DNA from: Octopus sinensis
Lineage: Eukaryota
Direction: 5' to 3'
Length of the DNA: 64,000 bases
Assembly (NCBI RefSeq): GCF_006345805.1
Contig: NC_043013.1
Coordinates: 34,472,001 to 34,536,000, forward strand
The notes beneath the pieces were generated by a model that did no database searches, was not told the DNA's origin, and worked only from the letters and a program-made list of their open reading frames with translations. This document shows, one piece after another, positions 1,707 through 6,199 of the stretch; positions within the stretch are counted from its first letter, which is position 1; each line of letters starts with the position of its first letter. A program made the position numbers and the translations under genes.

Positions 1707-4700
1707 TTAGAAAAACTTACCAAATTGGTTTGCCAAATTATTGATGTTCTTTGTGGCTTCACAGATGTCTCCTTCATATTCTATCTTCTTTTCAATGACA
1801 GCGACATTAAATCCAAAACGACTAAATTCCACAACAACCATGTAATCCATTGGCAGCTGGTAGGTTTTTCTTACTGATGAGAATTCTGCAAATGGCTTCA
1901 ATTGAAACTCTTCCAAAAATGTTTTGTTTTCCTTTGTAGCTGTTCCCAAATGAGGCCACTTTTTCAAAGCCTTTTGGATTTCATTTTCTTTCTCCACTTG
2001 CATGTAATTGCATGTATAAAGCTTTGCTTTATCGTCAGTTTCTGGCAATTTCAATTCCCATTTACCATTTCTCATACGCAGCCAGCTATCAGAGAGAATT
2101 AAATCATAAAATTTAGTGTCGTAATAGACATCTTCAAAAATTTCTTCTGAAATTTCAACGCCCTTTGCTTGAACAAGTTTTTCAAGATCGAAATTATCAA
2201 ATTGAAATTTCCGCCTTAGCAAAATAGCTTTTGCAATTGATTGAGAGATATTGGTTGAAGTCAGATTAAATTTCTGATCTACCATTGGTTGGCCTTTGTG
2301 ATCAAATGTTTGACCCTGAGTAACTGAGGTTTCAATTTTATTCTCTTCTCCGAAATTCCATTTAGGAATCTCCTTACAAGAATCAAAATTTGATTCATAT
2401 ACTTTTGTTTTCAAATCAGCACCAAAACCTCTAGCTTTCATTTCTAATTCTGCTTCAGTTCCGAATTTCGGAGTGTAGCTTAAATTCTTGGTTTCAATTG
2501 ATGCGTCTATACCACCTGCTTGTCTTGAATCAACTCCAACACCAACTGGTTTCTCAGATTTGAGATTCTTAATTTCTAATTCTGCTTCAGTTCCGAATTT
2601 CGGAGTGTAGCTTAAATTCTTGGATTCAATCGATGTATCTATACCACCTGCTTGTCTTGAATCAACTCCAACACCAACTGGTTTCTCAGATTTGAGATTC
2701 TTAATTTCTAATTCTGCTTCAGTTCCGAATTTCGGAGTGTAGCTTAAATTCTTGGATTCAATCGATGTATCTATACCACCTGCTTGTCTTGAATCAACTC
2801 CAACACCAACTGTTTTCTCAGATTTGAGATTCTTAATTTCTAATTCTGCTTCAGTTCCGAATTTCGGAGTGTAGCTTAAATTCTTGGATTCAATCGATGT
2901 ATCTATACCACCTGCTTGTCTTGAATCAACTCCAACACCAACTGTTTTCTCAGATTTGAGATTCTTAATTTCTAATTCTGCTTCAGTCGAATTTCGGAGT
3001 GTAGCTTAATTCTTGGATTCAATCGATGTATCTATACCACCTGCTTGTCTTGAATCAACTCCAACACAACTGTTTTCTCAGATTTGAGATTCTTAATTTC
3101 TAATTCTGCTTCAGTTCCGAATTTCGGAGTGTAGCTTAAATTCTTGGATTCAATCGATGTATCTATACCACCTGCTTGTCTTGAATCAACTCCAACACCA
3201 ACTGGTTTCTCAGATTTGAGATTCTTAATTTCTAATTCTGCTTCAGTTCCGAATTCGGAGTGTAGCTTAAATTCTTGGATTCAATCGATGTATCTATACC
3301 ACCTGCTTGTCTTGAATCAACTCCAACACCAATGTTTTCTCAGATTTGAGATTCTTAATTTCTAATTCTGCTTCAGTTCCGAATTTCGGAGTGTAGCTTA
3401 AATTCTTGGATTCAATCGATGTATCTATACCACCTGCTTGTCTTGAATCAACTCCAACACCAACTGGTTCTCAGATTTGAGATTCTTAATTTTAATTCTG
3501 CTTCAGTTCCGAATTTCGGAGTGTAGCTTAAATTCTTGGATTCAATCGATGTATCTATACCACCTGCTTGTCTTGAATCAACTCCAACACAACTGGTTTC
3601 TCAGATTTGAGATTCTTAATTTCTAATTCTGCTTCAGTTCCGAATTTCGGAGTGTAGCTTAAATTCTTGGATTCAATCGATGTATCTATACCACTGCTTG
3701 TCTTGAATCAACTCCAACACCAACTGTTTTCTCAGATTTGAGATTCTTAATTTCTAATTCTGCTTCAGTTCCGAATTTCGGAGTGTAGCTTAAATTCTTG
3801 GATTCAATCGATGTATCTATACCACCTGCTTGTCTTGAATCAACTCCAACGCCAACTGTTTTCTCAGATTTGAGATTCTTAATTTCTAATTCTGCTTCAG
3901 TTCCGAATTTCGGAGTGTAGCTTAAATTCTTGGATTCAATTGATGCGTCTATACCACCTGCTTGTCTTGAATCAACTCCAACGCCAACTGTTTTCTCAGA
4001 TTTGAGATTCTTAATTTCTAATTCTGCTTCAGTTCCAAATCTCGGTGTGTAGGCTAAATTCTTGGATTCAATCGATGTATCTATACCACCTGCTTGTCTT
4101 GAATCAACTCCAACACCAACTGGTTTCCCAGATTTGAGATTCTTAATTTCTAATTCTGCTTCAGTTCCGAATTTCGGAGTGTAGCTTAAATTCTTGGATT
4201 CAATTGATGCGTCTATACCACCTGCTTGTCTTGAATCAACTCCAACGCCAACTGTTTTCTCAGATTTGAGATTCTTAATTTCTAATTCTGCTTCAGTTCC
4301 AAATCTCGGTGTGTAGGCTAAATTCTTGGATTCAATCGATGTATCCATGCCACCTGCTTGTCTTGAATCAACCCCAACGCCAACTGTTTTCTCAGATTTG
4401 AGATTCTTAACTTCTAATTCTGCTTCAGTTCCAAATCTCGGAGGAGCGTAACTTAAATTCTTCAACTCAGTCGAAGGATCTATACCACCAGCTTGTCTTG
4501 GATCAATTCCAAAGCCAACAGTTTTCTCAGATGTGAGTTTTTTAATTTCCAGTTCTGCTTCAGTTCCGAATTTTGGAGTGTATGTTAAATTCTTGGATTC
4601 AATCGATGTATCCATACCACCTGCTTGTCTTGAATCAATTCCGATGCCAACAGTTTTCTCAGATGTGAGTTTTTTAACTTCTAATTCTGCTTCAGTTCCA

Positions 4701-6199
4701 AATTTCGGAGTGTATGTTAAATTCTTGGATTCAATTGATGTATCTATACCACCAGCTTGTCTTGAATCAACTCCAACACCAACTGTTTTCTCAGATTTAA
4801 GATTTTTAACTTCTAATTCTGCTTCAGTTCCGAATCTCGGAGTGTAGGCTAAATTCTTGGATTCAATCGATGTATCCATACCACCTGCTTGTCTTGAATC
4901 AATTCCAATGCCAACAGTTTTTTCAGATGTGAGTTTTTTAACTTCTAACTCTGCTTCAGTTCCGAATCTCGGAGTGTAGCTTAAATTCTTGGATTCAATC
5001 GATGTATCCATACCACCTGCTTGTCTTGAATCAATTCCAATGCCAACAGTTTTTTCAGATGTGAGTTTTTTAACTTCTAACTCTGCTTCAGTTCCGAATC
5101 TCGGAGTGTAGCTTAAATTCTTGGATTCAATCGATGTATCCATACCACCTGCTTGTCTTGAATCAATTCCAATGCCAACAGTTTTCTCAGATGTGAGTTT
5201 TTTAACTTCTAACTCTGCTTCAGTTCCGAATTTCGAAGTATATTGTAAATTCTTTGATTCAGTCGACGTATCTAGACCACCTGCTTGTCTTGAATCAACC
5301 CCAACGCCAATTGCTTTCTCAGATTTGAGATTTTTAATTCCTAATTCTGTTTCAGTTCTTAACTTTGGAGTGTAGCTTAAATTCTTGGATTCAGTTGATG
5401 TATCCATACCACCAACTTGTTTTAGACCAACACTACTTTCAATATTCTTTTCAGATCTGAGAGTGTTAACACCTAATTCAGCTTCAGTTCTAAGTTTAGG
5501 TGTAAAGGCTAAACTTTTGCTCGCATTTGGTGTGTCACTACTACCAGCTTGTCTTGGACTAATTCCTACTTCAACAGTCTTTGCAGACTTGATATCTTTT
5601 ATCCTTAAATCGGCTTCAGTTCCAAATTTATGACTGAGGGCTAAATTTCTTACTGCAGGTGACGTATCTCTACCACCTGCTTGCATTTTCTGAAGACTCT
5701 TTTCAATATTTTTTTCAGGGTTGATGTATAAACTTGTTGTAGCTGTCTCCTTAGCTTTATCATCAGCTTGCATTTCATCAATATCAACTTCAATATTCTT
5801 TTGAGTTTTGAGCAATATTTCAATTGTTTCCTGATGCACAACTTCTCCCTCAACAAAATCTCTAGCTTTTACAATCACCTTATCTTTGTGGATATCTGAG
5901 TCGAGCAAGAAATTTTCAAACCTATCAACACCTGGAAAGGTTTCGTTTGTATAGAAAGCTTGATCTTTCATTGCATCATTTCCATCAGCAGGATTTGCTT
6001 TCATTGCGGCAACTGGGGTACTCTCCACAGAATGAGAGACTTGCTCTTTGATAGAAACATCTTCAGCAAAGTTACAAGAGCGGTCCACTCTTTCGTAATC
6101 TACATTTGCAATCAGATCTGAACGAGTGTATCTTGGTCTACTAATCGTGAATTTCTGTTCAAAATGGTCAACGTAGCAGTTAAGGGACTGATCCTCCAT
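1707..6199 (-). CDS. Large protein (~1500 aa if frame restored): unique N-terminus, ~24-25 x 44-aa repeats, C-terminal thiamine-triphosphatase-like CYTH domain; frame broken in this assembly between 2987 and 3694
   Basis: ORFs 3686-6199 and 1707-2441 share the same repeat. The second frame stays open upstream to ~2988. An in-frame TAA at 6248-6250 lies upstream of ATG 6199. The offset 6199-2441=3758 plus 10 missing nt = 3768, a multiple of 3. Confidence 0.8.
1715..1720 (-). other. Probable 5' splice donor ending the large exon (TTTG|GTAAGT, phase 1)
   Basis: Perfect GTAAGT falls just where the CYTH alignment stops, 11 nt before the read-through TAA. The C-terminal helix of THTPA is missing from the unspliced ORF. 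Confidence 0.6.
1721..2225 (-). CDS. THTPA: CYTH/triphosphate tunnel metalloenzyme domain, divergent thiamine-triphosphatase homolog with degenerate active site
   Basis: ILLRRKF..FEDVYYDTKFYDLILSDSWLRMRNGKWELKLP..FAEFSSVRKTYQL..VVVEFSRFGFNVAVIE aligns by eye with THTPA [69 protein letters not shown]. It is a homolog, not necessarily the ortholog. Confidence 0.85.
2443..5690 (-). repeat. Coding tandem repeat, 132-bp / 44-aa unit, ~24-25 copies (GTEAELEIKNLKSEKTVGVGVDSRQAGGIDTSIESKNLSYTPKF)
   Basis: ccgaattt recurs at 2461, 2593, 2725, 2857 (132-bp period). The GTEA/RTEA-like anchor occurs 25 times up to ~5620. Confidence 0.98.

Follow-up and report, generated by a model that had tools for sequence, protein, structure and literature searches.

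The 64,000-nucleotide window of the Octopus sinensis genome analyzed here (contig NC_043013.1, positions 34,472,001 to 34,536,000; assembly accession GCA_006345805.1, cited as Li et al. 2020) carries on its minus strand a gene for a long repeat protein that ends in a CYTH domain of the thiamine triphosphatase (THTPA) type, one of the triphosphate tunnel metalloenzymes (TTMs). Coordinates are those of the window, except where they carry the label of the whole genome (G000; 2.72 Gb in 13,516 contigs), which was searched for second copies. The reading favored here, held with modest confidence and derived from sequence comparison, is that this is the octopus ortholog of a long molluscan THTPA-like protein: an intact gene whose tunnel domain would not hydrolyze its substrate and would serve as a triphosphate-binding module on a repeat spacer.

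Gene layout and the repeat array

The gene has two exons, one of 4.5 kb and a terminal one of 16 codons, with a 395.6-kb intron between them. Its parts are listed below.

1721..6199, minus strand: large coding exon, with the start Met at 6199 and G as the final exon base at 1721; 4479 nucleotides as assembled
6134..6175, minus strand: N-terminal motif YVDHFEQKFTISRP, with the φ-[VI]-[DE]-[RH]-x-E hallmark of long molluscan THTPA-like proteins
5633..6199, minus strand: unique N-terminal region, amino acids 1-189; 11.6% divergence from Octopus bimaculoides
2440..5632, minus strand: tandem array of 44-residue (132-nucleotide) units; 24 full units and one partial
2987..3694, minus strand: zone of ten single-base deletions, at 3694, 3590, 3492, 3469, 3332, 3255, 3067, 3009, and 2987 (two bases)
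2229..2441, minus strand: non-repetitive linker MKARGF...SQSIAK, from the array to the CYTH domain; 11.3% divergence from O. bimaculoides
1721..2228, minus strand: exon-1 part of the THTPA-type CYTH/TTM domain (AILLRRKF...NLANQF-G), from Pfam, phmmer, and Foldseek
1719..1720, minus strand: splice donor GT (CAATTTG/GTAAGT); the codons for KFF and stop at 1718..1707 are intron
G000:C17:34078097-34078148, minus strand: 16-codon terminal exon, outside the window, from the RefSeq models and the tail pattern

The annotated protein at the locus, XP_036366379.1 ('thiamine-triphosphatase-like [Octopus sinensis]'), is 257 amino acids in length and starts at the Met of the linker, that is, after the array. 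This truncation was apparently caused by assembly indels. An initial annotation, made from the sequence alone, had instead described a continuous open reading frame (ORF) of about 1500 residues from 6199 to 1707. The minus strand over this interval is not one ORF. Its 4493 nucleotides are indivisible by 3, and two open frames, 6199..3686 (837 codons) and 3005..1707 (432 codons), are separated by several changes of repeat frame, ten deletions in all. The end of the repeats and the CYTH domain share the unbroken 432-codon frame. The proposed length holds if the deletions are assembly errors: 4479 + 10 + 2 bases, with the missing bases restored, give exactly 1497 codons, and the conceptual protein, terminal exon included, would be about 1513 residues long. 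The start Met at 6199 matches the start of the 809-residue model of O. bimaculoides and that of two further relatives, P0002 and P0003, described below.

The 3' end of the gene also differs from that of the initial annotation, which took position 1707 as the end of the protein. The window ORF ends in NQFGKFF and a stop codon, while both RefSeq models end in NLANQFG-FQKLSLLDLVEQAEAY. The last three ORF codons are intron read-through, and the true C-terminus, FQKLSLLDLVEQAEAY, is encoded on the terminal exon. A degenerate pattern of this tail has a single match in the genome (C17:34078112-34078146, minus strand), which is preceded by ttttcttacag/GA and followed by GCT GAA GCT TAC TGA. The last intron is therefore 395,572 nucleotides long. 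The O. bimaculoides gene spans 311 kb, in agreement with a giant last intron.

The N-terminal region (amino acids 1-189) has zero domain matches in a Pfam search. It looks disordered in a single-sequence AF2 model, where pLDDT is below 50 over amino acids 1-225. The octopus copy of the N-terminal motif reads YVDHFEQKF and occupies amino acids 9-17.

The array follows this region. TRF reports 22.6 copies with a 93% match over 2440..5420, and a separately set register gives 24 full units and one partial, in line with the 24-25 copies first counted. The first three units are diverged and the central ones are near-identical. The consensus unit is TEAELEIKNLKSEKTVGVGVDSRQAGGIDTSIESKNLSYTPKFG; it contains no Cys or Trp, as had been noted, and also no His or Met, and its net charge is -1. 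When the in-frame units are compared, 21 variable sites fall at third codon positions versus 11 and 6 at the other two, and mean dN/dS among units is about 0.35. The array thus behaves as coding sequence. The 44-residue unit was not found elsewhere in the O. sinensis genome and is confined to the locus. A single-sequence AF2 model of the N-terminus and five repeats reached a pLDDT of 42, and its β-strand picture of the repeats is only a hint. Two kinds of match within the array were set aside. Pfam matches of the repeats (PelB C-terminal β-barrel, DUF4828, SNase, staphylokinase, and a nairovirus mucin-like domain) were dismissed because they are weak scores summed over many identical repeats, with no single stretch above threshold. 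The array also has ORFs on the plus strand, such as 4533..4847, which are unsupported mirror frames of the repeat.

The deletions fall in the most homogeneous core of the array. Units 15 to 20 (3769..2987) are 131, 131, 130, 130, 132, and 128 nucleotides long. Alignment to the consensus unit places the missing bases (six G, three A, and one T) mostly within homopolymers of 2-4 nucleotides. These six units contain zero insertions and zero private substitutions, and their one A/C variant also occurs in intact units. Downstream of the breaks, all 432 codons remain open. The ortholog of O. bimaculoides, XP_052829955 (809 residues), is continuous through the array into the CYTH domain. The ten deletions are almost certainly consensus errors of a long-read assembly, in which case the gene would be intact. 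They are read in this way because the O. bimaculoides ortholog is intact and because natural decay with ten indels should also have left many substitutions. The O. sinensis assembly is PacBio-based. Such errors would persist because short reads cannot be placed uniquely for polishing in the core of the array.

If the frameshifts were genuine, the locus would be a true pseudogene in O. sinensis, and only fragments or a 257-residue C-terminal product would be possible. The assembly does contain the frameshifts, and the RefSeq model does begin at a Met after the array. Ten deletions without an insertion or private substitution in 786 nucleotides are unlike a natural mutation spectrum, they lie just where reads lack unique placement, and the open downstream codons encode a CYTH domain 96% identical to that of O. 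bimaculoides, whose ortholog is intact. A pseudogene is considered the least probable of the readings weighed in this work.

The THTPA-type domain and its pocket

The C-terminal domain is a CYTH/TTM domain of the THTPA type, as first proposed. Its match to PF01928 scores 33.1 bits in HMMER, above the Pfam gathering score of 23.2, and reaches 35.1 bits when the genome is scanned. Against PDB sequences, phmmer returns only mouse and human THTPA (E 1e-8 to 9e-6). An AF2 model with 60 homologs has a pLDDT of 87.8, a pTM of 0.74, and the expected strand order, and it supports the presence of the β-barrel tunnel fold. The best nine Foldseek matches to this model are THTPA (E 1.8e-13, TM 0.57-0.66), and the top 39 are THTPA and other TTMs. 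Grouping with THTPA is based on the best PDB matches, on placement among THTPA-like proteins in the tree, and on the presence of the specificity Trp, W53. The metazoan 25-kDa THTPA (PDB 3BHD, 3TVL, 5A64, 5A65, and 2JMU) is the best match in both sequence and fold.

Residues were assigned with a HMMER alignment to the mouse and human THTPA structures (E 1e-8) and with a family alignment of 170 sequences. Three segments carry the changes.

2208..2222, minus strand: LLRRK in place of ExExK in strand β1; E7 to L, E9 to R, K11 retained
1992..2009, minus strand: NYMQVE; Y79 retained, E81 to Q, from both alignments
1791..1841, minus strand: MVVVEFSRFGFNVAVIE; D145 to V, D147 to E, E157 to V, E159 retained, from both alignments

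Both alignments bear out the replacements E7 to L, E9 to R, E81 to Q, and E157 to V given in the initial annotation. In the family, E7 is conserved in 155 of the 170 sequences, E9 in 154, E81 in 163, E157 in 155, and E159 in 157. The D145 to V replacement was also read correctly, but it is no meaningful loss, since Val stands at this position in 46 of the 170 family members, including the nearest relatives that are intact. D147 is replaced by E. K193 has no conservation at all across the alignment.

The pocket itself is kept. The basic residues of the tunnel (K11, R55, R57, K65, and R125) are all present, as are Y39 and Y79, which agrees with the earlier reading of these seven positions; W53 (the thiamine-specificity Trp), D37, E63, and E159 are likewise retained. 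The octopus domain therefore resembles THTPA in its tunnel and in W53, Y39, K65, Y79, K11, R55, R57, and R125. Unlike the free 25-kDa enzyme, it forms the C-terminus of a protein of about 1500 residues, and E7, E9, E81, and E157 have become L, R, Q, and V.

In TTMs, a Glu pair in β1, a mid-barrel Glu, and a C-terminal ExE pair form two metal centers that are critical for catalysis (Martinez et al. 2015, PMC4641920). With residues mapped onto THTPA, the octopus domain would lack four of these five glutamates, with Arg in place of one. Both metal centers would thus be dismantled and an additional Arg would enter the tunnel, so that triphosphate hydrolysis would be lost; the domain is predicted not to hydrolyze thiamine triphosphate (ThTP) in a Mg-dependent manner.

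The opposite reading is a divergent but active long THTPA, in which the domain would still be a hydrolase through its remaining acidic residues (E159, E147, E63, and D37) or through a changed metal requirement. Those four acidic residues do remain, the proposed Y39-K65 pair is intact, as is every substrate-binding residue, and THTPA activity varies widely among animals (review PMC8615392). These points must be set against the loss of four of the five metal-center glutamates, at positions conserved in at least 154 of the 170 relatives. Mutagenesis of TTMs shows that both metal centers are critical (PMC4641920), and far smaller changes are reported to inactivate pig THTPA (PMC8615392). Retained hydrolysis is accordingly rated as distinctly improbable.

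The long molluscan family and the position of Octopus

An exhaustive HMMER search returned 606 relatives. Many relatives are 400-1636 amino acids in length and have the CYTH domain at the extreme C-terminus. These long relatives share the N-terminal φ-[VI]-[DE]-[RH]-x-E motif, which is sometimes repeated and is followed by a long low-complexity region. Of 53 proteins of at least 400 residues, 35 match the strict motif pattern close to their N-terminus, versus 0 of 112 proteins of at most 260 residues. Most of the other proteins of at least 400 residues have near-variants recognized by eye (SIDHFEE, AIDHTED, CVDHYEN) or are N-terminally truncated.

All named long members are molluscan (Haliotis, Solemya, Nucella, Potamilus, Lymnaea, Bulinus, Pinctada, and Octopus). 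Named short forms are THTPAs of deuterostomes, and those closest in the tree come from echinoderms, hemichordates, and amphioxus. The long form thus appears to be the molluscan THTPA. The initial annotation knew of no described protein with this architecture, a view that does not survive the search. Long forms occur in Haliotis rubra (XP_046550597), Solemya velum (KAL5021149), Nucella lapillus (KAL8589947), Potamilus streckersoni (KAK3596884), Lymnaea stagnalis (CAL1526375), Bulinus truncatus (KAH9504948), and O. bimaculoides (XP_052829955), all annotated as 'uncharacterized' or 'hypothetical'. A literature search on thiamine triphosphatase and molluscs gave no match, nor was any account found of the long family in molluscs, of its N-terminal motif, or of the repeat expansion and glutamate loss in the octopus. 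The CYTH identity of the locus (from RefSeq) and the idea of a THTPA-derived pseudoenzyme (from Jhc1, discussed below) are already known.

The octopus proteins nest inside the long molluscan clade. They share with it the N-terminal motif, the long low-complexity middle, the C-terminal THTPA-type domain, and a short 'LGF...' tail. Most long forms retain IEVERKF and VGEIE. Unlike the octopus proteins, most long members, including P0002 and P0003 (the nearest outside Octopus), keep ExExK and ExE. The 44-residue tandem repeat is in no long member outside Octopus, and the unit profile, run on the relatives outside Octopus, gave no match. A word-indexed homolog search with a 460-residue query returned only the 90% cluster that holds the octopus proteins (792-residue representative), and such searches with pieces of 244 and 429 residues gave no match.

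Six long relatives (P0052, P0055, P0128, P0147, P0149, and P0150; 797-1636 residues) have lost ExExK and/or ExE residues. P0055 (Potamilus), P0147 (Bulinus), and P0149 (Lymnaea) have also lost K65, and the Lymnaea protein has its own, unrelated internal repeats. Loss of catalysis looks recurrent in the long molluscan family. The degenerate long members elsewhere also lack K65, R57, or K11, all of which are retained in the octopus.

A tree of CYTH domains was constructed with FastTree. It places O. sinensis and O. bimaculoides as sister to P0002 and P0003 with a support of 0.989. P0002 (SRR27666068, SRR27666080) and P0003 (ERR3431203) come from sequencing runs, as assembled contigs about 2.2 kb long. 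Each contig has a complete ORF, flanks resembling untranslated regions, and a continuous C-terminal tail, and is probably an mRNA. P0002 and P0003 are catalytically intact, and both have the N-terminus ...SIDHFEEKF; this N-terminus and the tree suggest that their sources are probably other cephalopods. In stem length, Octopus exceeds the P0002 and P0003 pair 2.8 times (0.999 versus 0.36). O. bimaculoides carries the same glutamate substitutions as O. sinensis. With both Octopus species lacking the glutamates and the sister pair intact, the loss is placed on the lineage leading to both Octopus species. The two lineages split about 34 million years ago (preprint 10.1101/2023.05.16.540928). The 44-residue repeat together with the glutamate loss is specific to the two sampled Octopus species and common to both.

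Searches of the O. sinensis genome revealed no second THTPA gene. The initial annotation had called for a search for a separate, intact copy; a query with an intact relative recovered only this locus, and a Pfam CYTH scan of the genome recovered only this locus and an unrelated 52-codon fragment of CyaB type on contig C5. The locus appears to be the sole THTPA-family gene of O. sinensis.

The C5 match (G000:C5:98569422-98569544, minus strand; locus L002, 1471-1629) reads YIAGQTRIHIDDVEGLGNFMELEV and scores 30.3 bits with Pfam CYTH, with its acidic motif intact. It was dismissed as a second THTPA, being an isolated fragment of CyaB/archaeal type. No neighboring exons were recognized within ±10 kb. 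Three origins are conceivable for the fragment: it may belong to a second TTM gene as an exon between very long introns, be a relic, or be foreign DNA.

Divergence between the two Octopus species was compared across the protein, as listed below.

Linker: 8/71 residues, 11.3%
N-terminal region: 22/189 residues, 11.6%
First three repeat units: 23/131 residues, 17.6%

Pooled, these regions outside the CYTH domain differ at 53 of 391 residues (13.6%). The CYTH domain differs at 7 of 186 (3.8%), a ratio of 0.28 (Fisher, p = 2e-4), and none of the seven differences is at a pocket residue. The domain therefore diverges about 3.6 times slower than the rest of the protein. Because the flanks cannot outpace neutrality without positive selection, the CYTH domain is read as being under purifying selection.

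This constraint bears on a further alternative, in which ThTPase (thiamine triphosphatase activity) became dispensable and catalysis was lost passively. The domain would then be kept for folding, stability, or expression, and the function would lie in the N-terminal motif and the spacer. THTPA activity has been lost or weakened repeatedly in animals (PMC8615392), the long molluscan forms have degenerated repeatedly, and the Octopus stem branch is long. A domain that is merely tolerated is unlikely to diverge 3.6 times slower over about 34 million years or to keep every basic pocket residue, and passive loss is judged very improbable.

Proposed role and other features of the window

A reasonable reading of these sequences is that the domain is non-catalytic yet functional. 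The pattern in the octopus, where the metal ligands are gone while the substrate pocket and purifying selection remain, is the one expected of a ligand-binding pseudoenzyme. In the reading favored here, the domain would have become a metal-independent binding module, whose likeliest ligand would be ThTP or another triphosphate or polyphosphate. A triphosphate-bearing ligand is proposed because W53, Y39, Y79, K11, R55, R57, K65, and R125 persist and because the tunnel has become more positive. The repeat array would be a long spacer that holds the domain at its end, and the conserved N-terminal motif would set location or partner.

Several points weigh against this reading. The assembled sequence does carry the frameshifts, and the RefSeq annotation covers only 257 residues. 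The initial annotation had used the selective retention of the phosphate-binding face as evidence. The residues are indeed retained, but the argument is weaker than it seemed, as D37, Y39, W53, and R55 persist even in relatives without K65, R57, or K11; their retention may be structural and no sign of ligand binding. With E159, E147, E63, and D37 still in place, residual activity is possible, if less likely. The constraint on the domain is deduced from protein divergence relative to flanking regions. The repeat number may be distorted in either Octopus assembly; in O. bimaculoides the repeat profile matches 11 times, twice weakly, versus about 24 units in O. sinensis. Finally, support for the exon junction at the 3' end comes from the RefSeq models and from the conserved 'LGF...' tail of relatives.

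The THTPA fold has been reused non-catalytically in vertebrates by Jhc1 (preprint). This pseudoenzyme, derived from THTPA, has a structural role in cilia, and a former catalytic position in it is needed for localization (preprint). Jhc1 forms a monophyletic vertebrate clade, with synteny in the ralgps1 intron. The octopus domain is likewise THTPA-derived, without the ExExK metal motif, and of proposed non-catalytic role. The two also differ. Jhc1 arose by duplication beside an intact Thtpa, and the octopus protein is the sole member of its family in the genome. Jhc1 also lacks R55, R57, and K65, whereas the octopus protein retains all basic residues and has the repeat array. Jhc1 has a predicted open fold and is reported absent from non-vertebrates, while the octopus protein groups with the molluscan long forms. 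The octopus case looks independent of, and different from, Jhc1.

The precedent of Jhc1 nevertheless gives rise to the alternative that the octopus CYTH domain is now a protein-protein interaction surface without a small-molecule ligand, and that the whole protein is a structural or scaffold component. P0055, P0147, and P0149, which have lost acidic as well as basic pocket residues, show in addition that the fold persists without an intact pocket. Unlike Jhc1 and those molluscan proteins, the octopus protein keeps K11, R55, R57, K65, R125, W53, Y39, and Y79, a set that is hard to explain without a phosphate ligand. Such an interaction role is regarded as unlikely, though it is the main alternative to the favored reading.

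A stronger form of the binding reading can be drawn as well. The sole octopus THTPA would have been turned into a metal-independent receptor that binds, and does not cleave, ThTP or another triphosphate or polyphosphate, carried on a rapidly expanding, β-rich rod of 44-residue units and anchored by its motif to a specific cellular structure. In this full form the proposal is unlikely. If it were true, the protein would be the first candidate ThTP-binding effector protein, and accumulation of ThTP in octopus tissues would be implied.

The physiological role of ThTP and of its dedicated hydrolase is a long-standing open question. The working picture of the field has been one small soluble THTPA per animal, with a few lineages lacking the activity. 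The long, motif-bearing THTPA, seemingly standard in molluscs, suggests a localized rather than a free enzyme in this phylum. To this the present locus adds that long forms have lost their catalytic glutamates repeatedly. THTPA is naturally inactive or missing in pig, fish, and birds (review PMC8615392), which the octopus resembles as a lineage-specific loss of ThTPase. In those animals, a short THTPA has a few substitutions or the gene is deleted; in the octopus, four metal ligands are replaced in a long repeat protein that is under constraint. A corollary of the reading of the octopus domain as a non-hydrolyzing binding module is that efficient ThTPase activity may be missing from the octopus cytosol, as in birds, pig, and fish. 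Octopus tissue would then be expected to show no ThTPase activity and high ThTP in comparison with a cephalopod that has an intact long form.

Elsewhere in the window, no coding exon is convincing. At 31453-31977 on the plus strand, a 174-codon open frame matches a GIY-YIG nuclease at 22.5 bits, against a Pfam cut-off of 22.6, and may be what is left of a mobile element, Penelope-like or other. At 40212-40727, a frame of similar appearance gave no Pfam match. A SINE-like dispersed repeat has at least seven copies in the window, on both strands, versus 0 expected by chance, with 35-nucleotide cores at 12285, 18072, 24219, 47515, 52447, 56441, and 57069; it also adjoins the CYTH fragment on C5. 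Microsatellites of the (TA/TG/CA) type are very abundant at 7980-8390, 10600-11100, 26300-27150, 44000-45100, and elsewhere, and produce long, spurious 'YIYIYI' frames on both strands.

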